Sequence record: MH221129.1
Length of the DNA: 64,000 bases
Strand: one strand, 5' to 3'
The notes under the pieces were generated by a model that ran no database searches, had not been told where the DNA came from, and saw only the letters and a list, made by a program, of their open reading frames with translations. Position numbers and translations under genes: made by a program. Each line of letters begins with the position of its first letter. Positions within the stretch are counted from its first letter, which is position 1. Of the stretch, positions 40,560 through 58,607 are shown piece by piece.

Positions 40560-42665
40560 TTATACTGTTATCTTCACTGTTGCCATTAAGTCATCGTACA
40601 ACGAAGCAGGAATCTCACGCTCGGTATAGAAGCCGACGCGATCGATATTGTTCTGCTGGCCTTCGAACAACAACATCGGTAACGCTGAACGAACACTGAT
40701 GAGTGTATTGTGGTCAACAAACCGTTTCCCGGTGGCCTTGGTAGCTTCTTCACTGTCGAAGCCAACCGCTGGGAACGGATTGGTTGGTGACTCCACACGG
40801 GAGATAGCCAACATGATTGCAATGTGCGTCATCGGGATGCCGCTCAGCTTGCGTTGGATGTATTTGAACGTATCCATCAGTGCATAAGTACACTGTTTCT
40901 CCGTCGCACCACCCATTTCTACCAACGTTACTGGTTTAATACGCCCCTGTTTCTTATTCATCTTCACAGTGGATGCCGTGTTGATGATTTCCACAATGTC
41001 TTCGTTCTTGTCTGCGGCGATGGAACGGATTTTGGTTTCCAGTCCTGCCACAAAGTCAGCCATCGACTCAGAACGGTTCGTGTAGATAAGAATCGGGTGT
41101 TTCGGATTCCACGCCTTCAATGGAATGTGTACCAGTTTCTTCACGCTGCGAATCGCATCGCGTTGCTTCAGGAAGTAATGCAGGAACGGTTTGGAGAAGT
41201 TCCCGCATACGCCCATGCGCACGTCAATACAATCTTCAGCGAGCAGTGACCCATTTGCATCGTAACGCTGGAAGGCCAAGTCGGTAATTTCCGGTAAAGC
41301 CGTTTCATCGATAGCGTCGAGATCTTCATGATACGCAATCTGGCTGAGTTCCGAATACACTTTATCGGTAACAACGAGTTCGTATTCTGGCCAAGTACCA
41401 CGTTGTGGTTTCGGTAACAAGCACAACCCTTTGAGAGAATTGTGTTTGTACTCGGTCATATACTCACGCATTCCCGGTGTCAGGATAAGGTTCAGCAGAT
41501 AACGCAGGAAGTCAAGGTGCTTCGTGGACAAAATCCCTTGAGTACCTTTCTCGGAGATAGATGTGGATGCCAGGTGACCCGGTGACGTACCTTCGGAGAG
41601 GTTATAAATCAAGTCTCCCATACAGGTCGCACAGATGGACTGGTTCGCCATCTCATTACAGGTCATTGCACTACGGAAGACGATCGGTTTCCCAACCAAA
41701 TCCGCATACCCATCTTTCTCAAAACGCAGCCATGGGCCGTTGTTGCCTTCCAGGCGATAACGCATCCCCACCATCGCCTTATACGCACGCTCGTCGAGCT
41801 TGGTATCTTTAAAGGTGTAATGGTGGGCGTGCGTAGTACCGCAGTCCTCGTACGTGAAGTACATCAACACGTTAGCAGCTAACTGCAGCTTACGTGACGC
41901 GTACTCTGCTTCGGCAATCTTATCTGTGTTATACAGATGCGAACGCGAAGTAGCACCGGACTCTTTCAGGCGACTGATGACAGAATGCATCCCAGTAAAG
42001 AAGCCTTCCCACACCTGGTTGGTGTAGACGCGGGAGTCAATCTCTGAGGTTTTCCCACGTACGAAGGCTTGCAGCACCTGGTTCATCTTAATGGTTCCGT
42101 CCAGTACGGACATGACCACCGGATTATACTTCAGTGCTGGGTCTTTAAAGATGGCTTCGATCAGCTGATATGCATCTTCAACCTTATCACGTCCTTCTTC
42201 ATCATAACCGGTCGGATATTCTTTCTCCCACTGGCGAATGATTTCAAAGTTCGGATGGTCGTAGATTTCCATCATCGTGTCATAGTCGATTGTCGTGCAG
42301 TATGCCAGCAAGTTTTTCACTGTCATGTTGAACGCATCGGCGTAGACATGTTGACTCAGGATATAGCGCGTTTCTGCCAGGTCAACCCCGGCTTTACGGG
42401 CCAGCACCGCAGCTTCGGACATAAAGTCCAGATGGAGGTCGTCTGTGGCCACCTGATTCGGACGATAAGCCATCGTGGATGGCGTCGGTACCTGTGGATA
42501 CAGACGCGAGACCCCCCAATATGGCCAACTGAGCTTGATGTGTCGCGACGACATCTCAATAGATTTGCCATCGTCAAACGTGACGTAATAACGACCACGC
42601 AGTTTCCACACCTCATCAGATGTGAGCGTGCGCAAATCGCGCACGTGGACAGAACGACCCGCCAT
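40560..42665 (-). CDS. Non-virion RNAP beta' C-terminal subunit (phiKZ gp74-like)
   Basis: EYASRKLQ, DCGT, RSAMTC..ICATC, GHLASTSISEKGTQGILSTKH (trigger loop). Confidence 0.9.
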   Translation of the reverse strand: MAGRSVHVRDLRTLTSDEVWKLRGRYYVTFDDGKSIEMSSRHIKLSWPYWGVSRLYPQVPTPSTMAYRPNQVATDDLHLDFMSEAAVLARKAGVDLAETRYILSQHVYADAFNMTVKNLLAYCTTIDYDTMMEIYDHPNFEIIRQWEKEYPTGYDEEGRDKVEDAYQLIEAIFKDPALKYNPVVMSVLDGTIKMNQVLQAFVRGKTSEIDSRVYTNQVWEGFFTGMHSVISRLKESGATSRSHLYNTDKIAEAEYASRKLQLAANVLMYFTYEDCGTTHAHHYTFKDTKLDERAYKAMVGMRYRLEGNNGPWLRFEKDGYADLVGKPIVFRSAMTCNEMANQSICATCMGDLIYNLSEGTSPGHLASTSISEKGTQGILSTKHLDFLRYLLNLILTPGMREYMTEYKHNSLKGLCLLPKPQRGTWPEYELVVTDKVYSELSQIAYHEDLDAIDETALPEITDLAFQRYDANGSLLAEDCIDVRMGVCGNFSKPFLHYFLKQRDAIRSVKKLVHIPLKAWNPKHPILIYTNRSESMADFVAGLETKIRSIAADKNEDIVEIINTASTVKMNKKQGRIKPVTLVEMGGATEKQCTYALMDTFKYIQRKLSGIPMTHIAIMLAISRVESPTNPFPAVGFDSEEATKATGKRFVDHNTLISVRSALPMLLFEGQQNNIDRVGFYTEREIPASLYDDLMATVKITV

Positions 42666-44902
42666 TATTTCTTCTCCCTAATTGGACGTACTAACTGGAA
42701 CCCTTCACAAATGTGGATGTTACGAATCATCCTGTCGATTTGTGAATCCCCCAACGGCATCTTCTTGCGATCGATTAGCACACCCGGATTGGTAGGTGTT
42801 TTGGAATTGAACATTCCAGTGACGATTGCGCGATGCACGGCTGGGTTGTTGGCACGGTCATGCGTTTCCGGGAAGTTACCCGGACCGAAACCGTCCGTCA
42901 GTCGCTGCTCTGACGGCCCGCCCCATTTCAGGGATTTGAGGTTGATAGGATAAGAGCCACGCCCTTGGTTGGATGCATCAATGGAACCCAGGAAGTTCGT
43001 ATACATGGACGAGATACTGGAGAACTCACGGCCGGTTTTATCCAGACGCAACGTTTCCACACTCCCCACGTAGAACTGGTTCTTGGTCCACTCTTTCTCA
43101 CCCTGATAGTTTGTGATCAGCAGCTTGGATTTACGCGGTGCATATTCTCCTAAACGCTGGCAGATTTCCACCTGGGTGTCGTCCAGTTCGTGCGGCAGCC
43201 AGATACGGATAGTGAAGTCGTAGATCTCTTTGAAGAGTTCTCGCTTCGCTTCTACCGTGTTGTGGCTGGCGTTCAAATAGAACGTCCACTTCGGGTTGTA
43301 CCTGTCGATATAGTCCATCAGGATGGACCACGCTTCCTCTATCTGACCTGCAGCCAAAATCGGTTGCAGACGCATCTTCAACTGTTCCGATGCCGCAGAC
43401 CAATACATGTGGAACAGTGCAGCGTAAGTGGAGCGACGAATTACAGCGTTCATGGAGCGAATAACATGCACCCGTTCACCGAATTCGTTAATCGGCATTT
43501 CGTGGTCTGGGCGAACTGCACCCACAATACCCTTTGTACCAGAGCGGTCGGTAATTTTCGAAGACACGGTGACAGGGATTGGATAGCGTACCACGATGCG
43601 AATGGTATAACTGCCAATTGGGTCCCAGAGCCCACGTTGTACCGGTTGCGCCAGTTTGTTTAACACGTTCTTATCTGCAGAACGGTTGTACTCACCTTTG
43701 CGCATGGCTTCTTCGTATTCTCGACCAATCTCTTCACGAAACTCACTATAGACTTCGTAAGTTTCTGAGGAGAACGCTTTGTCCAGGATCTCAAACGCTT
43801 TCGGTGACCAGACAATGTTCTTGTCTTTGGACATTGCGAAATAGAAACGCACCACGTCATTGTAGAAACGTTTTAGTGCATTAGCGTAGTGATCTAACTC
43901 GCGTTTGTTCTCTTCGGTACATGCAATGTTGTTGGTACCGCGATCGCATTTGGTTTCATCACGCCACACCTGAATATCTACCACACGAGAACCCGTTAAG
44001 TCCAGCTTCTCAATGTCGTTTGCCAGGTTTGCTTTGTAATGTTCCGGGTCAGCGTCCACATATTCGCAGCGATCGAAATGCGGCGAAGCGTGTTGCGTTT
44101 CCCCCACATGTGAATCGATGGCTGCCCACAACTTATCGAAACGTCGTGCCGCCAGCACCAACCCATCATCACGAACGGCTTTACCCACTCCCGGCATGTA
44201 CTGCGGACGACGGGTGCCATCAAGTTGCGTTGTCCCGTAGATATCCAGCAAATACTCATCGTCACGCAGAGTGAAGTCGATGATGCGAATACCACTGGCG
44301 TGCATGGATGCCGCTGCAGTTTCAGAGAGAGTGTAAGAATCCTCAATGATGTCCGGATGCGACATCGTAACTGTTGGCAAGCTCACACCATCCACAAACT
44401 CGCCGTCCAGCTGAGCAGGCAATGTGGTAAGCATTTCATCTTTCTCTAACTGCTGCGTCTGTCCACGAAGCAACGCCTGCAATTTACCTGTCGGAGATTT
44501 ACGCGACGAGAAGATGTTGTCATGCGAGGTGTAATAGTTAATGTCAATTACATCAATCATGACTTTGCGCTGATTGGTTAGTTCCGTGCGCTTAAAGAAA
44601 ATCACATGCTGACGCGGATCGTGGTCACCCTCACGACCATACCGCGCAAATACTGCTGCCCGAGTAACACCTTCTTTCGTCGTATAACTACATACCGTAC
44701 CGCTATCCTCAACTATGTCGTTAAAACAATAGTCATGGTAGTTCACATCCGCACCAGTAAAATGTGCGGACGGTTGTGGCTCATCAAGCGGCACCGCCGA
44801 CTTCATATGTCCACCTACCATCGAGGCACGTGCCCCAGATACTCCAGTGATGTTCGTCTCACGGTCAGCAACACTTGACATGAGTTCGACTGGTGTTTTC
44901 AT
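42665..44902 (-). CDS. Non-virion RNAP beta C-terminal subunit (phiKZ gp71/73-like)
   Basis: RASMVGGHMKSAVP, KITDRSGTKG (K..R.G.KG), LRLDK. Uninterrupted. Confidence 0.9.
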   Translation of the reverse strand: MKTPVELMSSVADRETNITGVSGARASMVGGHMKSAVPLDEPQPSAHFTGADVNYHDYCFNDIVEDSGTVCSYTTKEGVTRAAVFARYGREGDHDPRQHVIFFKRTELTNQRKVMIDVIDINYYTSHDNIFSSRKSPTGKLQALLRGQTQQLEKDEMLTTLPAQLDGEFVDGVSLPTVTMSHPDIIEDSYTLSETAAASMHASGIRIIDFTLRDDEYLLDIYGTTQLDGTRRPQYMPGVGKAVRDDGLVLAARRFDKLWAAIDSHVGETQHASPHFDRCEYVDADPEHYKANLANDIEKLDLTGSRVVDIQVWRDETKCDRGTNNIACTEENKRELDHYANALKRFYNDVVRFYFAMSKDKNIVWSPKAFEILDKAFSSETYEVYSEFREEIGREYEEAMRKGEYNRSADKNVLNKLAQPVQRGLWDPIGSYTIRIVVRYPIPVTVSSKITDRSGTKGIVGAVRPDHEMPINEFGERVHVIRSMNAVIRRSTYAALFHMYWSAASEQLKMRLQPILAAGQIEEAWSILMDYIDRYNPKWTFYLNASHNTVEAKRELFKEIYDFTIRIWLPHELDDTQVEICQRLGEYAPRKSKLLITNYQGEKEWTKNQFYVGSVETLRLDKTGREFSSISSMYTNFLGSIDASNQGRGSYPINLKSLKWGGPSEQRLTDGFGPGNFPETHDRANNPAVHRAIVTGMFNSKTPTNPGVLIDRKKMPLGDSQIDRMIRNIHICEGFQLVRPIREKK

Positions 44903-44968: not shown

Positions 44969-45292
44969 ATGCTCGATAGCTTCACTACCCTCGCCGAAGT
45001 AATACCTTCGCCTGATTCGACCAAGTATAAGGTGTTGCACGACTATGCAGACTTTTTGCGCAAACACCCTGAAACAACAGAAGAGGTCGTTGACCCGCGT
45101 TATGCCTGGCCAGAGACCCACAGCTTCTACGCCTATTGTCGATTAAAAGAATACGACGATATGATCATTTTCCCGATGATGCTGATGAACGGAATCATGA
45201 CCCCGCTCGACTTCACGCCAGACATCCAAACATTACTGGTGCCAAGCGTTTCAGTTGTCAGCAATATCCTGTCAACGATTGTAGATGCTTGA
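44969..45292 (+). CDS. LysM/T4 gp53-P2 gpX-like small baseplate protein
   Basis: 107 aa; MMLMNGIMTPLDFTPDIQTLLVP resembles the gpX/gp53 pattern; SD AAGGAG. Confidence 0.55.
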   Translation: MLDSFTTLAEVIPSPDSTKYKVLHDYADFLRKHPETTEEVVDPRYAWPETHSFYAYCRLKEYDDMIIFPMMLMNGIMTPLDFTPDIQTLLVPSVSVVSNILSTIVDA

Positions 45293-45329: not shown

Positions 45330-46697
45330 TTAGAGCCGTGCAGACCCGAATGGTAAGTTGGTGAAGTTATCACCACCGCCACCGAGAACATTGCTCGACC
45401 CGCCTAACCCACCGCTACCACCTAGCAGATTGTTGCTCCCGCCCAGCTGGTTATCAGTTCCCCCGAGGATGTTACTGGAACTTCCCAGCAAACCACCACC
45501 CAGTTCGTTTTGTTTCTTCTCTACCGCATTACCACGAATCGCTTCTGCCAGAGACAGCTCATTGATGCTGTTCTTCGGCATTTGGCCATTGTTTTCACGC
45601 AGTGTACGTTGGAGCGCAGGCGGCAATGCATCAAAGTTATTCGATGCAGTTTGCTGCTGTGCTTTCTTCGCACGGAAGAAGTTTACCGGATCGTCGAGAT
45701 CGACTTCCTGCTTCGGTGCACTTTCCGATGCCAAACGTTGCGTCAACGCATTGTTGCCCGTTGGGGTACGTCCGATACGGAAGTCAGAAGCGGTGGTATC
45801 CGTTGCAGAATCGTTGCGTGGACCCGTGTTGTACGGCAGCGTTTGAATCACGTTGTCATACACCGCCATGTTATCCAGCTGACCAATCCACTCTTCTTCC
45901 AGTGGACGCAGTGGGGTATAGTCGCGTAAACCGCGCACCACCAGGTTATAGTTGGTCACGTATTGTGCCCAACCGCGTGCCAGTGAGCCAAAGTACGGAC
46001 GTGGGTCGTTAGAACCCACCACGCTCGGATACCAACCGAATACCGCTGTCAGCAGGTTAAATAGAATTACCTTATCCTGCTTACGCTGGAGTTTCGCGCC
46101 GAAGAACGTTGCAGTACCGTCGAGAGATTCTTCTTCAAACATGTGCTTGTAATTAGCCACACGGATGAACTTCGTTCCATCGATGGCCATATCGCTGGAG
46201 ATGAAGATGCTGGTAATCTTCGTCTTTCTGTCTTCCTGCAACAGACCGTACACGTAGTTCTTCACTGCGTTCCAGCTCTGCACCAATTTCTTGTCCATGG
46301 TTGGATCTTTGATATCGGCACAGACCACGTCGCTAAGGAACTTCTTGTACGCCGCCAGACGGATAGTCTTCCCTTCCGCTGCTGTTTCCAGAATGGCATC
46401 GATTAACTCGAAGCTTTTCAGGAACAGGTTAGCGTTGATAGACTTCTTGAGGAAACGAATAGTACCCGATTCCCCTGCCAGCACCGATTCACACAACGGA
46501 TGGAAAGCATGACATTCGCTGCCATCCTCGTCTTCCATCCCGTTCTTAATCATGGTGGCAGTAGGAAGCGCCAGGCGGCGCTTCACTTTATTGTAGGTGA
46601 ACATGGCCGGGACGTTTCCGTCTTGTACCAGCAAGTCACCGTCGAACCCGTAGCCCAGCGAGGTCAGGAACGAGCGATAGAACTCATTAATCTTCAT
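45330..46697 (-). CDS. Nucleus-associated core protein (phiKZ gp70-like)
   Basis: 455 aa between PicA and nvRNAP beta-C; C-terminal LGG repeats. Confidence 0.65.
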   Translation of the reverse strand: MKINEFYRSFLTSLGYGFDGDLLVQDGNVPAMFTYNKVKRRLALPTATMIKNGMEDEDGSECHAFHPLCESVLAGESGTIRFLKKSINANLFLKSFELIDAILETAAEGKTIRLAAYKKFLSDVVCADIKDPTMDKKLVQSWNAVKNYVYGLLQEDRKTKITSIFISSDMAIDGTKFIRVANYKHMFEEESLDGTATFFGAKLQRKQDKVILFNLLTAVFGWYPSVVGSNDPRPYFGSLARGWAQYVTNYNLVVRGLRDYTPLRPLEEEWIGQLDNMAVYDNVIQTLPYNTGPRNDSATDTTASDFRIGRTPTGNNALTQRLASESAPKQEVDLDDPVNFFRAKKAQQQTASNNFDALPPALQRTLRENNGQMPKNSINELSLAEAIRGNAVEKKQNELGGGLLGSSSNILGGTDNQLGGSNNLLGGSGGLGGSSNVLGGGGDNFTNLPFGSARL

Positions 46698-46709
46698 GGT
46701 TAATAATCC

Positions 46710-48437
46710 TTAATCTAATAGACCTTTGCCGAGGCTACCGCCACCGAGACCGCCTAAACCACCCATCCCGTTATCAGACGGAGTGTCCAGACCGCCCAGT
46801 AAACCACTACCCAGTCCACCTGTGCTCGTTGGCACGTTAGACAGAATACGGTTACGGCCGTTTCTTTTCTCGTAGCTATTATAGCCTTCTTCAACGGCGG
46901 TCAGCAGCGTTGCGGTGTTCTGCGCCAGCTCACCCACGTACAGGAGATCGGTGGTGTTACCGGTATGCAGACGGAACTGCATGAACGAGGCGTAGGTGTA
47001 ATATTCTAATGGCTCGTCGTCGACACGGATTTCCACACGGATAACCGTACCCAGCAGGGCTTTAACCAGCATGTGACAACGAATATGGTTGTGCTTCGTT
47101 ACCTGAATCATTGCTTCGCTTAGATTCTGATAGAAGCGGCGACCTAACGCCTGCGGTAATTGACCATGAGTCAGACTACCGATGGACTCAGGCAGAATCT
47201 GCAGCGTAGGTTCGTTCATGATATCCACATTACGGTTATCGTAAACGAAGCTCACTTCACCCAGCAGGTTACGGGACATAATCGAACCCAGCATCATCGC
47301 CAGGTCGTACGACACCAGTGAACCTTGAGTAGAGAAGCCGTTCTTACCAATCCAGTGGTCAGTTTGTGAGGTCAGGCCCATACCCAGGCCACGGCGTGCT
47401 GCCATGGACAGAGAATCGGAGATGCACTCTGTCAGACGCAGTGGGTTGGAGATTGCGTCGCGCAGATCACGAAGACGGAAAGTAGCTTTGCTGGTTGTTT
47501 TCCAGCCACCGGAAACATCCGACATGTTATTCTGCAATGCCTGGCGCATCGACGAGATCAGTTCGTGGTTGCTGAAGTTACGAATAACGCCACGCTGTTT
47601 CAGTTCGGATTCGACCCCAATGGAGTTGTTGCCCGCAAAGAAACTTTCCACGCTACCCAGCTCAGTGTCAATACCGGAGCTGGCCAGATATGCATTACTG
47701 ATTGCCGATACATAGTTTTCCGGACGGGTTAACTGCGACACCATTAGTTGTGGGGAAGAGTTAGAGGTGGCGGACAGAATTGAATCTTTCGTCGGCACGT
47801 ACTTCTCACCGGTGTTCAATTCAATACGTTTTACCATGTCAGCCGCTTTCGCGATCGAAATGATGTCCACCGCACTTTCTACCTGACCTTCAACTGACAA
47901 TGCTTTCGACAGCACGTAGTTGTCCAGCAAGCGATACGAGTTAGGGTTCAGTGTACGTCCACCAAACGCATCATGCTCGTACGTTGCCTGCATCCCGTAA
48001 ATGTCGTTAATGTACAGCACCATATCGTCCGGTAACATCCCGCTCAAGCTCTGCTCTGCCTGACTGGTGTAACCGGAGATAATGTATTGCGTTTCCTGCG
48101 TACGGGTCGTATTACCAGCCAGTGGCTTAGCAATCAATACCGCAACAAAGTTAAAGATACCGGTGTCGCGGGATTCGTACGCAAACTGAACCGGGTTCGC
48201 GTCATCGTCCGATACGTTAATGAACGGACGTTCGAACCCATTCTGGCCACCGTCGAAACCGACGATGCCTGATAATGCTTGTTGATACTGCGGTGTAGAC
48301 ACCGCTTTTTCCCCGCCCAGTTCAACCGCTGCTGCCAGGTCATCCAGAGCACCAGTCGAAGCATTGAAACCAATACGACGACGAACTTGCTCAGGAACAT
48401 CATAGACCGGGTACATTTGTAGATTTACGAGTTGCAT
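46710..48437 (-). CDS. picA: Nuclear import factor PicA/Imp1 (phiKZ gp69-like)
   Basis: 575 aa directly downstream of the gp68-like subunit in the chimallivirus core block. Assignment rests on synteny and size. Confidence 0.7.
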   Translation of the reverse strand: MQLVNLQMYPVYDVPEQVRRRIGFNASTGALDDLAAAVELGGEKAVSTPQYQQALSGIVGFDGGQNGFERPFINVSDDDANPVQFAYESRDTGIFNFVAVLIAKPLAGNTTRTQETQYIISGYTSQAEQSLSGMLPDDMVLYINDIYGMQATYEHDAFGGRTLNPNSYRLLDNYVLSKALSVEGQVESAVDIISIAKAADMVKRIELNTGEKYVPTKDSILSATSNSSPQLMVSQLTRPENYVSAISNAYLASSGIDTELGSVESFFAGNNSIGVESELKQRGVIRNFSNHELISSMRQALQNNMSDVSGGWKTTSKATFRLRDLRDAISNPLRLTECISDSLSMAARRGLGMGLTSQTDHWIGKNGFSTQGSLVSYDLAMMLGSIMSRNLLGEVSFVYDNRNVDIMNEPTLQILPESIGSLTHGQLPQALGRRFYQNLSEAMIQVTKHNHIRCHMLVKALLGTVIRVEIRVDDEPLEYYTYASFMQFRLHTGNTTDLLYVGELAQNTATLLTAVEEGYNSYEKRNGRNRILSNVPTSTGGLGSGLLGGLDTPSDNGMGGLGGLGGGSLGKGLLD

Positions 48438-48448
48438 TTAAATACTCC

Positions 48449-50083
48449 TTAAGAATTAAACCATTCAACTTCTTCTAACTTGCGACGTGCGTTGATTACC
48501 ATGAACTCAGCCAGGGTATTGTGCAGCGACAAGCGAGGGATATAGCGTGCGTCTTCCGTCTCACACTTGAGCAGCTCAGCTGCTTCCGGTGTAGCCCTGA
48601 GATGGAAGAGGTAGGGGTTAATGTGATCTTTGTGCAGAATGTTTAACGACTCCCGTGGTGTTGACTGCGGTTCTAAGTTCCGCGGGTTACGATACTCCTG
48701 AAGATAATATCTATCCAAATCTGTTTTGAGTTCAGGTCGGATAGGATCTGCTGCATACCCGCTTGACAGCTCAGACCACTGCATATCGCAACTCAGCAGT
48801 TGCGCAATGTCATGCATCCCGTAGTTGAGATAGGTTGCCTGCGCCAACGCCATGCCGTGCAGGAATGCTTCCGGACCACATTCCGTGTACGTCTTATAAT
48901 GCGCGCTGCGGTGTAACGCCAGCGCCACTAACCATTCGTGCAGTACGTTGATTGGCCCTTGGTGTGTTGTCAACATTGAATCGATGAGAATCTTCACGTC
49001 GGCCGGAGCAGCGTTTGGTAAGTTCATCGTCTTCAGGAAACGGCGATAGTCCAGGAACGACACTTCGGTACGCACAAACTCTTTCATTGGTGCAGAGCTG
49101 CGAGCCTGTACCAAGTCCATGGAGTTAATCTTACCCTTCTCACCGTTAAACACCACGCTTTCAGGATGGAGTTTCAACAACACCGGCTGGTTGGAGATCT
49201 TGTTGGCAAAGCCTGTTTCAATCTCCTGTTTGACCAGGAAATACATCCCCGTCACCACGTTGTTGTTGGACATCGCTTCTTTCGGTAATTCACCGCCGAC
49301 GTCACGCACCGCCAATAAACGGATGATGGTATACGCTTTGATATACTCTTCCATCATGTCCGTGCCGTAACCACGCATGGCTGCCAGTACCGACAAGCTG
49401 GTATTGTTCATTCCTTTATTAGACTGCTCTTTGTCCACCTTCTCCATCACGCTCTGCAAGAACCCTTCCAGTTTCAGGATACCCGGTAAAGACATGACTT
49501 CGGTTTCATGGAGCAGCTCCAGGCAATAGGTGAGATCGTCAACCATTTTGCGCTGGGTTTCAATGGGCAGATTCTTACCGATAGGGAATACACCCATGGT
49601 CAAGAACACGGGAATATATGGCTTCACAGCCAACGCCAGTATCAATAGCTCGTAATAGTCCGGGCGAATATAAGTCATCGCTTCCGGATAATTGCTGTTC
49701 ATGTCGTCATGTGTGTCTTCCATGTTCTGGGGAATCCACAGCTTATCGATAGGATACAGCTTACGATAGACATCCGCTTTATGGAATTTAGCGATAGTCT
49801 TAACGATTTTCGGCATGTGCTCACGCTGCGTCTCTTTCGATTCGTTTGCCAGCTCGTCAAGCATCAGGTAGGCCATGAACAGCTCATCTTGTTCGTCAGG
49901 TGTCATGTAATCCCACACCCGCTGAAGTTCCATGAACAAGATACCATCGCGTGGACAACGTTTACCGTTTACTTCAATAAACTCGGGCACGTTATTGTCT
50001 TTACGATAACGCAGGCCAATAAAAGCGACTTCCTGACCGTGATGTTCAATTACCATCCGATCCTTTAGTTTGGTGATTTTCAT
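48449..50083 (-). CDS. Non-virion RNAP fifth (sigma-like) subunit (phiKZ gp68-like)
   Basis: ATG 50083 preferred (GGAG SD), about 544 aa. Synteny between ChmC and PicA. Confidence 0.75.
   Translation of the reverse strand: MKITKLKDRMVIEHHGQEVAFIGLRYRKDNNVPEFIEVNGKRCPRDGILFMELQRVWDYMTPDEQDELFMAYLMLDELANESKETQREHMPKIVKTIAKFHKADVYRKLYPIDKLWIPQNMEDTHDDMNSNYPEAMTYIRPDYYELLILALAVKPYIPVFLTMGVFPIGKNLPIETQRKMVDDLTYCLELLHETEVMSLPGILKLEGFLQSVMEKVDKEQSNKGMNNTSLSVLAAMRGYGTDMMEEYIKAYTIIRLLAVRDVGGELPKEAMSNNNVVTGMYFLVKQEIETGFANKISNQPVLLKLHPESVVFNGEKGKINSMDLVQARSSAPMKEFVRTEVSFLDYRRFLKTMNLPNAAPADVKILIDSMLTTHQGPINVLHEWLVALALHRSAHYKTYTECGPEAFLHGMALAQATYLNYGMHDIAQLLSCDMQWSELSSGYAADPIRPELKTDLDRYYLQEYRNPRNLEPQSTPRESLNILHKDHINPYLFHLRATPEAAELLKCETEDARYIPRLSLHNTLAEFMVINARRKLEEVEWFNS
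48703..48716 (-). promoter_or_regulatory. Intragenic early-promoter copy upstream of picA
   Basis: GGATAGATATTATC, identical to 50119-50132, about 265 nt upstream of picA. Confidence 0.5.
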
Positions 50084-50118
50084 TATATTTGAACTCCGCG
50101 AATAGTCGATTGCCCTAT

Positions 50119-50132
50119 GATAATATCTATCC
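50119..50132 (-). promoter_or_regulatory. Early promoter variant upstream of the gp68-like gene
   Basis: Minus strand GGATAGATATTATC. Confidence 0.6.
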
Positions 50133-50177
50133 AAGATAGCTTACAGTGCAAGTTGCCCCACAACGCATAACCGTTTA

Positions 50178-50217: not shown

Positions 50218-50871
50218 TTAGATGAAGCTATCAAAGTCGTCGTTGGTAGATGGTGGTGCCGATTGCTGCTGACCGCCCTGGTAACCGTTACCGCCGCTGC
50301 GGTTACCGCCGCCATAACCACCTTTGCCGTAATTGCCGCCGCCAGTGTTGTTGAATTCACGCGCTTTATACTTCTCTTCGAGGTTCTTCAGGAACAGCTC
50401 AAAGTTATTGATAAAGGCACGAGCACAACGTTCAGACAGTTCGAGGTCAGAAACTTGCTGACCATCACGGAAGATACGGAAGCCTTTCGGGTAAGAGAAG
50501 TAGAACTTCTTCTGGCGTGCGCCAACGCCTTGAATTTCACCTGCAATTGCCATGAAAGGAACAAGGTTGTCTTCACGACCAACAATCACACTCACCGGCG
50601 GCTTGTTGCCGTTTTCGTTGCTGAACTTCACCATGCTCTTTTCATTTTTGCGCAGGCAGTCTTGCAGCGCTTCAATGATAGTGCGGCACACAGTGATCGG
50701 TGCGGAGAAATACAGACCTTCGCCTTTGCCGAAAGAGTAGCTAAACTTCATGGACTCAACATCACCGTTAAAGTCATTCGGTTCAATATTGAGTTTACGA
50801 GTGCGGTTTTGCTGATCCGGTTCGGTTTGCGGATAAAGCCATTTGTCTTTGAAAATTTCTTGGTTAATCAT
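50218..50871 (-). CDS. chmC: Nucleus-associated nucleic-acid-binding protein ChmC (phiKZ gp67-like)
   Basis: 217 aa; folded N-terminal domain, G/N/Q-rich tail and acidic-aromatic tip; lies immediately upstream of the gp68-like gene. Confidence 0.7.
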   Translation of the reverse strand: MINQEIFKDKWLYPQTEPDQQNRTRKLNIEPNDFNGDVESMKFSYSFGKGEGLYFSAPITVCRTIIEALQDCLRKNEKSMVKFSNENGNKPPVSVIVGREDNLVPFMAIAGEIQGVGARQKKFYFSYPKGFRIFRDGQQVSDLELSERCARAFINNFELFLKNLEEKYKAREFNNTGGGNYGKGGYGGGNRSGGNGYQGGQQQSAPPSTNDDFDSFI

Positions 50872-56744: not shown

Positions 56745-58607
56745 TTACAGTTTGAAGCTGCCCAGAGTAACGCCCAGATCGTAGTCGCTACCGCTCGCAG
56801 ACAGGCCAGTACCAGACAGAGTGAAGTCTTCCCCACCGTTGTTGAAGAACAGGGAAGTCGCCATCGTGTTGTAGGCGTTCACACCGGTCATAGACCAGGT
56901 GCAGTGCTTACGTACGAAGTCCAGCAGGCATTTCGCGAACACCGGGTTAATCGCCATATCCAGAGATTCACCAGTAGTGGTAGGACCTTTGGAAGCGAAC
57001 AGAGAGGCGGCCAGCTTCAGCATGTAGATACGCTGAGCACGGTTGCCAAACTCACGGTGAGAGTAGGACTGTGCGTTCAGGTAGGTGTACACATCGTTCG
57101 CGTTGTCGCCGAGTTTGGTTACAACGGAGATGAGGTCCATATCCTGGAAGCTACGTTTCTGTGCAGTACCGGTGTAAACACCAGACACAGTTGGTACCGC
57201 AGCTTTAACGACGTGACGGCACTGGATAGTACCATTGTAATCGTTACCCAGCGCTTGTTTCAGCGCGGCAGCGAATTCCGCCGTGAAGCTGGTCTCTGCA
57301 ACAACTTCGCCCTGGCCGTTACGCGGGGACATACCGTTCAGGATTGCGAGCAGCTGTTTCAGAGAGTTGTCGTTACCGACTGCGATTTCAGACAGCATAG
57401 TAGACAGACCACCCAGGCCGTTACCGGCGCGATGGCTAACCACCAGTGCTGCTTCACGCGGTGCGAACATATCCAGGCAACCTTCGATAGCTTCTTTGCT
57501 ACCGTCGATTTTGGACACGTCAGGACGCGCATCAGCACCCCAGGACAGGTATTCTGCCACACGGGAGAACTTACGGTCAGACTTGTTCAGACGTTTCATG
57601 AACAGGTCACGCCAGCCGCCGATAGCCGCGATTTCCGCGAAGGAAGCCAGCATCATCAGCTGACGTTCGAACGGTGCCAGAGAACCTTCCGCCTGAGAGT
57701 CGACCAGGCTTACCACGATTTCAGCCTGCAGCTGTTTCAGGTCGTAGACGCCGTTGTTAACTGGCTTCTGACCGGTAAAGCGCATGTTGATGAAACCGGT
57801 ACCGTGAACACGCGGGTACAGTTGAATCTGGCTGTTATCCAGCAGAGTCGGAGTAGCCGCATCGGCGTTGGTCGGAGTGTGTTCCAGGGTGATAGCAAAG
57901 TCAGCACGTTGTGCGTGACCGTTACCGTCGATTACAGCACCTTCTTCCAGCGGCATCACAGATGCATTGAAGCGATCGGATTTACGCAGACGCATTTCGC
58001 CCAGGTAACCAGAGATACGGCCGAAGATGCCGAGCATCATCTGACCCATCAGCTGACGTGCCCAGGTTTCGTTCAGCTCTTTGCCCAGATCCGGCACAGA
58101 GTTGATGGACATGTAGTTTGCGTTCGGCAGGTTGTGAGTTGCCATGATGTTAGCCTGAATCACTTTCAGGGTTTCATCGTTGAACAGCTCAGTGATGGTG
58201 TAGTAATCTTCCTGCGCGCCGTTAGACACTTCTTTCAGGCGCAGAGACTGGCCACGTTCGAAGAAGATGATACCGTACAGCCAATGGCCTTTGTATTCAC
58301 CAGCAACGTATGCCGCAGAACCCATCTCGCCACCTACGCCGGTAGCGGTGCCCCAACGGAAACGGTTGAGGTATTCGTTGTTCTTACGCATTTCGTCCAG
58401 CAGACTGACGAAGTGAGTTGCGTAAGAGTTAATGTTACGCCAGCCGAAAGAGCTGTCGAAGGAACCTACGTTGGTAACACCGGCGACGTTTTGAGCAGGT
58501 GCAACAGTTTCGTTACCCAGTCCGCCCAGACCAGCTGCAGGCTGCTGAGTAGTAGTAGTAGTCTGCTGAGAAGCGCCGTTGTTGTTATCGTTCACAACTT
58601 TAACCAT
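56745..58607 (-). CDS. chmA: Chimallin, major phage nuclear shell protein (phiKZ gp54-like)
   Basis: 620 aa with low-complexity N-terminal arm and extreme codon bias; directly upstream of beta'-N; two early promoters upstream and a terminator downstream. Confidence 0.85.
   Translation of the reverse strand: MVKVVNDNNNGASQQTTTTTQQPAAGLGGLGNETVAPAQNVAGVTNVGSFDSSFGWRNINSYATHFVSLLDEMRKNNEYLNRFRWGTATGVGGEMGSAAYVAGEYKGHWLYGIIFFERGQSLRLKEVSNGAQEDYYTITELFNDETLKVIQANIMATHNLPNANYMSINSVPDLGKELNETWARQLMGQMMLGIFGRISGYLGEMRLRKSDRFNASVMPLEEGAVIDGNGHAQRADFAITLEHTPTNADAATPTLLDNSQIQLYPRVHGTGFINMRFTGQKPVNNGVYDLKQLQAEIVVSLVDSQAEGSLAPFERQLMMLASFAEIAAIGGWRDLFMKRLNKSDRKFSRVAEYLSWGADARPDVSKIDGSKEAIEGCLDMFAPREAALVVSHRAGNGLGGLSTMLSEIAVGNDNSLKQLLAILNGMSPRNGQGEVVAETSFTAEFAAALKQALGNDYNGTIQCRHVVKAAVPTVSGVYTGTAQKRSFQDMDLISVVTKLGDNANDVYTYLNAQSYSHREFGNRAQRIYMLKLAASLFASKGPTTTGESLDMAINPVFAKCLLDFVRKHCTWSMTGVNAYNTMATSLFFNNGGEDFTLSGTGLSASGSDYDLGVTLGSFKL

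Follow-up and report, generated by a model that had tools for sequence, protein, structure and literature searches.

The stretch analyzed here, a 64,000-nucleotide segment of the sequence record MH221129.1 (hereinafter the window), is 100% identical to the Salmonella phages SPAsTU and STsAS, which are nucleus-forming, SPN3US-like chimalliviruses of the genus Seoulvirus, and ~77% identical to SPN3US itself. Its minus strand codes for adjacent homologs of PicA/Imp1, to which published work on phiKZ, PhiPA3 and Goslar assigns a role in selective protein import, and of the phiKZ gp70/PhiPA3 gp64 family. We observed that both proteins end in low-complexity C-terminal tails that are predicted to be disordered, are retained across related phages, and co-vary in their chemistry with each other and with the terminal arms of chimallin (ChmA), the nuclear shell's major protein. 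Such in-step chemistry suggests that these proteins have a docking code in common at the phage nucleus; a barrier resembling the nuclear pore is not proven by it. We tentatively propose, with somewhat less than even confidence, that the tails are co-evolving multivalent tethers to the chimallin lattice. A literature search, incomplete in its coverage, returned no paper on the PicA or gp70 tails, their co-variation, the phage nucleus together with Phe-Gly (FG) repeats, or disorder in Imp1.

Identification of the proteins and their tails

The window PicA is related to phiKZ gp69 by profile comparison (hhalign, 98.9% probability, E=3.5e-17, 393 columns), and phmmer links it to the phiKZ-like relative P0063, which is in turn 26% identical to gp69 (E=2e-47). 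Through its N-terminal domain the gp70-like protein recovers PHIKZ070 (E=1e-4) and PhiPA3 064 (E=2e-12) in tblastn searches, and a hidden Markov model (HMM) of the family finds a syntenic open reading frame (ORF) at all loci. The chimallin homolog aligns over residues 49-568 with phiKZ gp54-type shell proteins in a profile-profile comparison (98.3%, E=1.4e-14, 499 columns) and is syntenic with genes in records annotated as “nuclear shell protein”. Direct BLASTP does not connect the window PicA and chimallin to the phiKZ proteins; single-sequence PDB searches with these three proteins and the ChmC homolog discussed below gave nothing useful, a profile of the enterobacterial chimallins found nothing in PDB, and Pfam has no family for any of the four. 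Since these single-sequence and profile searches were empty, the homology of PicA and chimallin was settled by profile-profile comparison, and the identities that an initial annotation had given to the three genes hold.

AlphaFold2 models PicA confidently over residues 1-535 (mean predicted local distance difference test score, pLDDT, of 81.9) and, based on family alignments, the gp70-like protein over residues 1-287 (pLDDT 80-97); a fold search of PDB with the latter model gave no significant match. Both proteins are predicted to be disordered beyond these regions (Table 1). Of the 40 residues of the PicA tail, 16 are Gly and 9 are Leu (40% and 22%), and the order of these residues does not go beyond what composition yields (three Leu-Gly-Gly, LGG, and five Leu-Gly units; P=0.12 and 0.24 in shuffles). 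In the gp70-like protein LGG units occur at residues 399, 411, 418, 425, 431 and 438, the intervals being 12, 7, 7, 6 and 7; the mean in shuffles of this 61-residue tail is 1.04 such units, and six were not attained in any of 20,000. A DNA tandem repeat was sought beneath the gp70 and PicA tails and none was found, which rules it out as the source of the LGG array. The initial annotation had drawn attention to the six LGG units, to the Gly/Leu-rich PicA C-terminus and to a Leu/Gly motif in the chimallin N-terminal arm, and had treated the tails as low-complexity regions; all three elements are present on the minus strand, the number of LGG units (6-12 residues apart) exceeds the shuffle expectation, and the predicted disorder extends to both tails. 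The chimallin layout of an alignable core with variable ends agrees with that of 201phi2-1 (PMC9365700), and the Leu/Gly motif of its N-tail is found only in the SPN3US/phiEaH2 group.

Such compositions are rare in this genome. A density of at least 9 Gly in 25 residues is reached by just three window ORFs of at least 80 residues, namely those coding for the gp70-like protein, PicA and the 217-residue ChmC homolog, and dense hydrophobic-Gly-Gly runs occur in three ORFs of the 250.7-kb SPAsTU genome, of which two are PicA and gp70. The third is a protein of 554 residues with a dense Leu/Gly-Gly run at residues 105-139, encoded outside the window (MH221129.1 55007-56671, minus strand; L059:6008-7672); it belongs to phrog_8185, has tblastn matches only in the enterobacterial clade and is poorly conserved over its N-terminal 225 residues.

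Table 1. Positions in the window of the genes and protein segments discussed in the text
Feature	Coordinates	Strand	Basis
PicA/Imp1 homolog, 575 aa, folded part 1-535	46710..48437	-	phrog_3141, hhalign, phmmer, synteny, AlphaFold2
Gly/Leu-rich disordered C-terminal PicA tail, residues 536-575	46713..46832	-	pLDDT <50; composition
phiKZ gp70/PhiPA3 gp64 family gene, 455 aa, folded domain 1-287	45330..46697	-	phrog_3520 (E=9e-130), tblastn, synteny, AlphaFold2
Predicted disordered C-terminal region of gp70-like protein, residues 288-455 (~168 aa)	45333..45836	-	pLDDT mostly <50
LGG array (six units) and short C-terminal end motif, residues 395-455	45333..45515	-	shuffle test
Chimallin (ChmA) major nuclear-shell protein homolog, 620 aa	56745..58607	-	profile match, synteny, phrog_8316
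Chimallin N-tail, residues 1-47, not alignable between clades	58467..58607	-	alignable core begins near 47-49
Chimallin N-tail Leu/Gly motif, residues 24-31	58515-58538	-	sequence
Chimallin C-terminal 40 residues, 581-620, CTS-arm region	56748..56867	-	beyond alignable core
ChmC/Imp6 (phiKZ gp67) homolog, 217 aa, contrast case	50218..50871	-	synteny, family HMM
ChmC G/N/Y/R-rich tail	50221-50379	-	composition
phiKZ gp68-like non-virion RNA polymerase subunit	48449..50134	-	phrog_3209, position, homology
Non-virion RNA polymerase beta subunit	42665..44902	-	phrog_3295 (E=3e-259)

Retention and chemistry of the tails across lineages

For comparison, 40 genomes were reduced to 21 lineages by a cut at 70% identity of the gp68-like protein, with tail boundaries taken from fixed windows or alignment anchors. 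A low-complexity gp70 C-terminal region is present in all 21 (73-219 residues, median 162), its four commonest residues accounting for 42-72% of the sequence, and a PicA tail of at least 20 residues is found in 16 of the 21; thus, the tails are not missing from most orthologs, an outcome that the initial annotation had named as one that would undo its proposal. Sequence conservation is poor, tails from different clades cannot be aligned, and the chemistry varies by lineage. Leu/Gly tails characterize the SPN3US-like and most Erwinia phages, while Asn-Pro-Phe (NPF) repeats are found in the CR5 group. One metagenomic sister lineage displays genuine FG and FGG repeats, with nine FG dipeptides in its gp70 tail and serial S-F-G units in its PicA tail. 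Tails rich in Met/Gln/Pro are seen in phiKZ, PhiPA3, the 201phi2-1-like group and Deimos-Minion, and tails rich in Arg/Asp in pVa-21, Xoo-sp14, FBKp24 and several further metagenomic lineages. Hence, the expectation that the hydrophobic repeat composition would be conserved across the family does not stand: Leu- and Phe-based tails are confined to the enterobacterial clade, and the Met/Gln/Pro- or Arg/Asp-rich tails of the other lineages imply that a hydrophobic selective phase is not the conserved property.

Two relatives are oddly annotated at these loci. The gp70 homolog of Viktualia (L057, 7378-8703) is annotated on the wrong strand, and in CR5 (L049, 13632-14900) the annotated start of CR5_033 lies later than that of the homologous ORF. 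In several Salmonella phage SPFM genomes, short and scrappy matches to PicA and gp70 (P0040-P0044) occur near 213 kb; these fragments seem to reflect faulty assembly or annotation, not biology.

Co-variation of the tails with each other and with the chimallin arms

The PicA and gp70 tails are more similar in composition within a genome than between lineages (0.622 versus 0.499, permutation P=5e-5), and both their Gly fractions (rho 0.91) and their charged fractions (rho 0.84) are correlated. As a phylogenetic control we used ten disjoint sister pairs, a small sample, in nine of which the composition changes of PicA and gp70 agree (mean r 0.28, p=0.02). On the tree of the folded parts two independent Leu-to-Phe switches are placed within the enterobacterial clade, each of them matched in PicA and gp70. 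The two tails also share 72 3-mers against the 52 expected from composition (P=0.002).

Chimallin, sampled in 13 lineages, shows the same behavior: in composition, the 45 residues at either end of it are closer to the gp70 tail encoded in the same genome than to the gp70 tails of other lineages (0.618 versus 0.514, P=6e-5), with a comparable result for the PicA tail (P=5e-4). The chimallin of the FG-repeat lineage has FGG units in place of the Leu/Gly motif, so that literal FG repeats are found there in PicA, gp70 and chimallin alike; in pVa-21 and Xoo-sp14 chimallin is rich in Arg/Asp at either end, the arms of FBKp24 are also R/D-rich, and the Deimos-Minion N-tail is Gln-rich. The common tail chemistry of the three proteins, which the initial annotation had noted in the window, is therefore borne out within lineages by both of these comparisons. 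By eye, the extreme C-terminus of PicA mimics the last residues of chimallin in Wellington, CR5 and L017; we dropped such mimicry as a main claim because it is not general and the sharing of 3-mers is not significant.

A control from the same operon is provided by ChmC/Imp6, the tail of which keeps one G/N/Y/R-rich composition throughout the 21 lineages, unlike the PicA and gp70 tails, and shows no association with those tails or the chimallin arms (P=0.91 and 0.92). In the window homolog this tail ends in an acidic-aromatic tip, which we take to be reminiscent of the C-terminal tip of the bacterial single-stranded DNA-binding protein (SSB). With its syntenic position and its Asn/Gly-rich tail with an acidic end, the homolog fits the published description of ChmC, whose tail drives the formation of condensates with RNA in vitro (PMC11077065). 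We considered proteome-wide composition or GC content as the main driver and rejected both, as GC does not track the chemistry classes and the Leu, Phe, Met, Gly and charged fractions of the folded bodies are flat, whereas the tails range from 0 to 65% charged. The permutation effects obtained with folded bodies are 4-6 times smaller than those of the tails, and we read them as a minor contribution of general drift.

Comparison with FG nucleoporins and other flexible extensions

The tails resemble the FG nucleoporins in combining hydrophobic stickers with disordered, nearly uncharged Gly/Ser/Asn-rich spacers, in being carried by proteins at the edge of a compartment that imports selectively, and in the presence of true FG repeats in one related phage lineage. 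Like an FG-repeat domain, the tails have pLDDT values below 50 (gp70-like 288-455, PicA 536-575); unlike one, those of the window hold LGG units and a single FG, with the 6-9 FG dipeptides per tail being restricted to the related metagenomic lineage. The sticker in the window is Leu, not Phe, and the array spans tens of residues, not hundreds, with six units in ~50 residues of a 168-residue disordered region, although the spacers are indeed G/S/N-rich and nearly uncharged. Other phage lineages use charged or Met/Gln-rich tails. There is no homology to nucleoporins, as judged from the lack of a Pfam family, of a PDB sequence match and, for the gp70-like model, of a significant fold match. Further, channel lining, cohesion and transport receptors are features of nucleoporins, while the phage tails are known from their sequence and predicted disorder.

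Parallels are also found within the phage nucleus itself. The ChmC tail (PhiPA3 gp61/phiKZ gp67, Imp6) is likewise a disordered, low-complexity C-terminal extension of a shell-associated protein from the same operon; it differs in retaining one chemistry (G/N/Y/R with an acidic end) in all lineages without co-variation. The N- and C-terminal segment (NTS/CTS) arms of chimallin, described for 201phi2-1 gp105 and Goslar gp189, are flexible terminal extensions that dock on neighboring protomers and mediate the contacts that build the lattice (PMC9365700); of these, CTS1 and CTS2 were defined for 201phi2-1, in which the N-tail (residues 1-47) is dispensable for assembly (PMC9365700). The PicA and gp70 tails have the lineage-specific composition of these arms in common, although similarity at the motif level is weak; also, the arms belong to the lattice protein and cryo-electron microscopy maps show the segments by which they dock, whereas for the tails docking is proposed.

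A proposed tether and its alternatives

We posit that the C-terminal tails of PicA and gp70 are intrinsically disordered sticker-and-spacer arms that, together with the N-tail and C-terminal arms of chimallin, might constitute one co-evolving interaction system. The sticker would be Leu in a Gly/Ser/Asn spacer in the window phage, and Phe, Met/Gln or Arg/Asp elsewhere. Their most likely role would be that of a weak, multivalent, like-with-like tether, which could anchor at the chimallin lattice the folded domains of gp70 and of the cargo selector PicA, with the tails perhaps touching the chimallin arms or the grooves used by these arms, as well as each other. We favor such a tether because the conserved feature is the presence of matched low-complexity arms and not a hydrophobic FG-like repeat. 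What is known of the partners is as follows: phiKZ gp70 is named among the nuclear proteins (bioRxiv 10.1101/2024.03.27.586873), and PhiPA3 gp61, gp63 and gp64 are expressed early and localized to the nuclear shell, with gp63 and gp64 co-purifying with ChmB.

Several observations weigh against this proposal. Contact of the tails with chimallin, and localization by that contact, is a step that we infer. phiKZ Imp1, which binds gp67, did not pull down gp70 when the two were co-expressed in E. coli (bioRxiv 10.1101/2024.03.27.586873). The PicA tail is essentially absent in four lineages, and the Leu/Gly motif of the chimallin N-tail is absent in Huxley, Wellington and CR5. The tails have no significant excess of 3-mers in common with the chimallin C-end (P=0.14 and 0.59), the likeness being compositional only. 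The permutation tests ignore phylogeny, and the deep branches of the tree are not well placed. Finally, the folded bodies are themselves associated with the tails: the PicA body with the gp70 tail (0.573 versus 0.551, P=5e-5), and the ChmA body with the gp70 tail (P=1.4e-4) and the PicA tail (P=2.4e-3). The sister-pair contrast for the PicA body is also weakly positive (mean r 0.19, p=0.06), which suggests that part of the tail signal may be general drift.

The initial annotation had envisaged a convergent selective barrier or docking mesh; of the two, the docking mesh agrees more closely with the data. In the form of an FG-nucleoporin-like barrier, the tails, possibly along with the chimallin arms, would act as a cohesive phase filling or lining the import site. 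Such a phase would be in keeping with stickers that recur at intervals of 6-12 residues among G/S/N spacers almost devoid of charge, with lattice pores that are too narrow for folded proteins (PMC9365700), and with the condensation in vitro of the ChmC tail from the same operon (PMC11077065); the idea is kept alive above all by the FG-repeat lineage, with its nine FG in the gp70 tail and serial S-F-G in PicA, and by the localization of PicA to one or a few puncta on the shell, which are thought to be import sites (PMC12908238). It is weakened by the shortness of the array, the many lineages with R/D- or M/Q/P-rich rather than hydrophobic tails, and the four lineages with tail-less PicA. It is further weakened by the source of selectivity: PicA/Imp1 picks its cargo via several surfaces of its folded body (PMC12908238; bioRxiv 10.1101/2024.03.27.586873), the cargo being recognized by its own surface, and the published selectivity mutations fall in the folded part, contrary to the view of the tails as the origin of selectivity. 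Neither is there a known analog of the transport receptors or any nucleoporin match in Pfam or PDB, and gp70, which had been taken for an import protein, is not a demonstrated import factor: its PhiPA3 counterpart gp64 is known only as shell-associated, and the phiKZ protein does not co-purify with Imp1. We accordingly consider a barrier of this kind improbable. We are equally doubtful of a hybrid, wherein the chimallin arms and both tails form a lineage-specific cohesive layer at the import site, convergent with the FG barrier, and the sticker serves as a compatibility code.

It is unlikely, though worth entertaining, that the tails instead bind a shared third partner such as ChmB, or merely each other, via short linear motifs, with the likeness to the chimallin arms being incidental. 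In some lineages the PicA and gp70 tails do share motifs beyond composition, including an Asn-Ser-Leu-Leu type unit in both tails and matching C-terminal ends in PhiPA3 and L033. The ChmB co-purification and the non-significant motif sharing with the chimallin C-end fit this alternative too. Against mutual binding stands the behavior of phiKZ Imp1 noted above, and an incidental likeness would hardly account for chimallin arms whose composition follows that of both tails through widely differing chemistries when the ChmC tail fails to do so. We regard as rather unlikely that the tails engage in no specific interaction at all, being generic flexible spacers or solubility bristles whose composition drifts with a lineage-wide mutational or translational bias. 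The lack of alignable sequence between clades, the PicA tail order within its composition, and body controls that are weak yet not null are what such drift would produce. Likewise, phiKZ 070 is not among the listed hits of an antisense screen (PMC12571901), for which we did not check whether 070 was targeted. Against drift stand the ChmC tail, which has one composition in all lineages, and the flat Leu, Phe and charged fractions of the bodies; GC content does not explain the pattern, the order of the LGG units is far beyond chance, and the gp70 tail is kept in every lineage. A homogenization of the adjacent PicA and gp70 genes by gene conversion was already disfavored and is very improbable. 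The two tail-coding regions lie ~1.4 kb apart, are both rich in Gly codons and share matches of 13-19 nucleotides, but the longest shared strings fall within the null of synonymous-codon shuffles in 19 of the 21 lineages, the other two being marginal, and chimallin, 10 kb away, switches likewise.

Gene order and neighboring genes

The PicA and gp70-family genes belong to a conserved minus-strand operon comprising the gp66-like gene, ChmC/Imp6, the gp68-like gene, PicA/Imp1, the gp70-family gene and the polymerase beta subunit. The matching order is annotated in phiKZ (PHIKZ066 to 071) and PhiPA3 (060 to 065), and the order gp66-gp67-gp68-gp69-gp70 was recovered in all 40 genomes with a complete locus, so that PicA is consistently flanked by the gp68-like RNA polymerase subunit and gp70. 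The Pfam match of the beta subunit to RNA_pol_Rpb2_6 is weak and under the gathering cut-off (E=1.2e-4; 21.8 versus 23.4 bits).

Between the gp70-like and beta subunit genes, a gene for a 107-residue protein (phrog_3455, 44969-45292) lies on the plus strand. Among the annotated enterobacterial, Vibrio, Xanthomonas and Klebsiella relatives that we inspected, each has an opposite-strand gene at this site; in phiKZ the position is taken by just a small gene on the same strand, and PhiPA3 lacks a gene there. The label of baseplate wedge protein that a few records give to this gene seems doubtful. Elsewhere in MH221129.1, a Cys/Ser/Gly-rich ORF of 130 residues (235081-235473, plus strand) lies in a gap of the SPAsTU annotation and may be spurious.

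Implications

These observations bear on what keeps PicA at the chimallin shell and on the way folded proteins get across it. The switching of tail chemistry in step names candidate contact elements in chimallin, PicA and gp70, and gives the core gene gp70 a place in the phage-nucleus system. The analogy with the nuclear pore needs careful wording, for matched low-complexity tails are conserved and hydrophobic FG-like repeats are not. The Leu, Phe and charged lineages provide a natural “swap” series for descriptive comparison, and a sticker compatibility code, if true, could help explain why components from different nucleus-forming phages do not mix.

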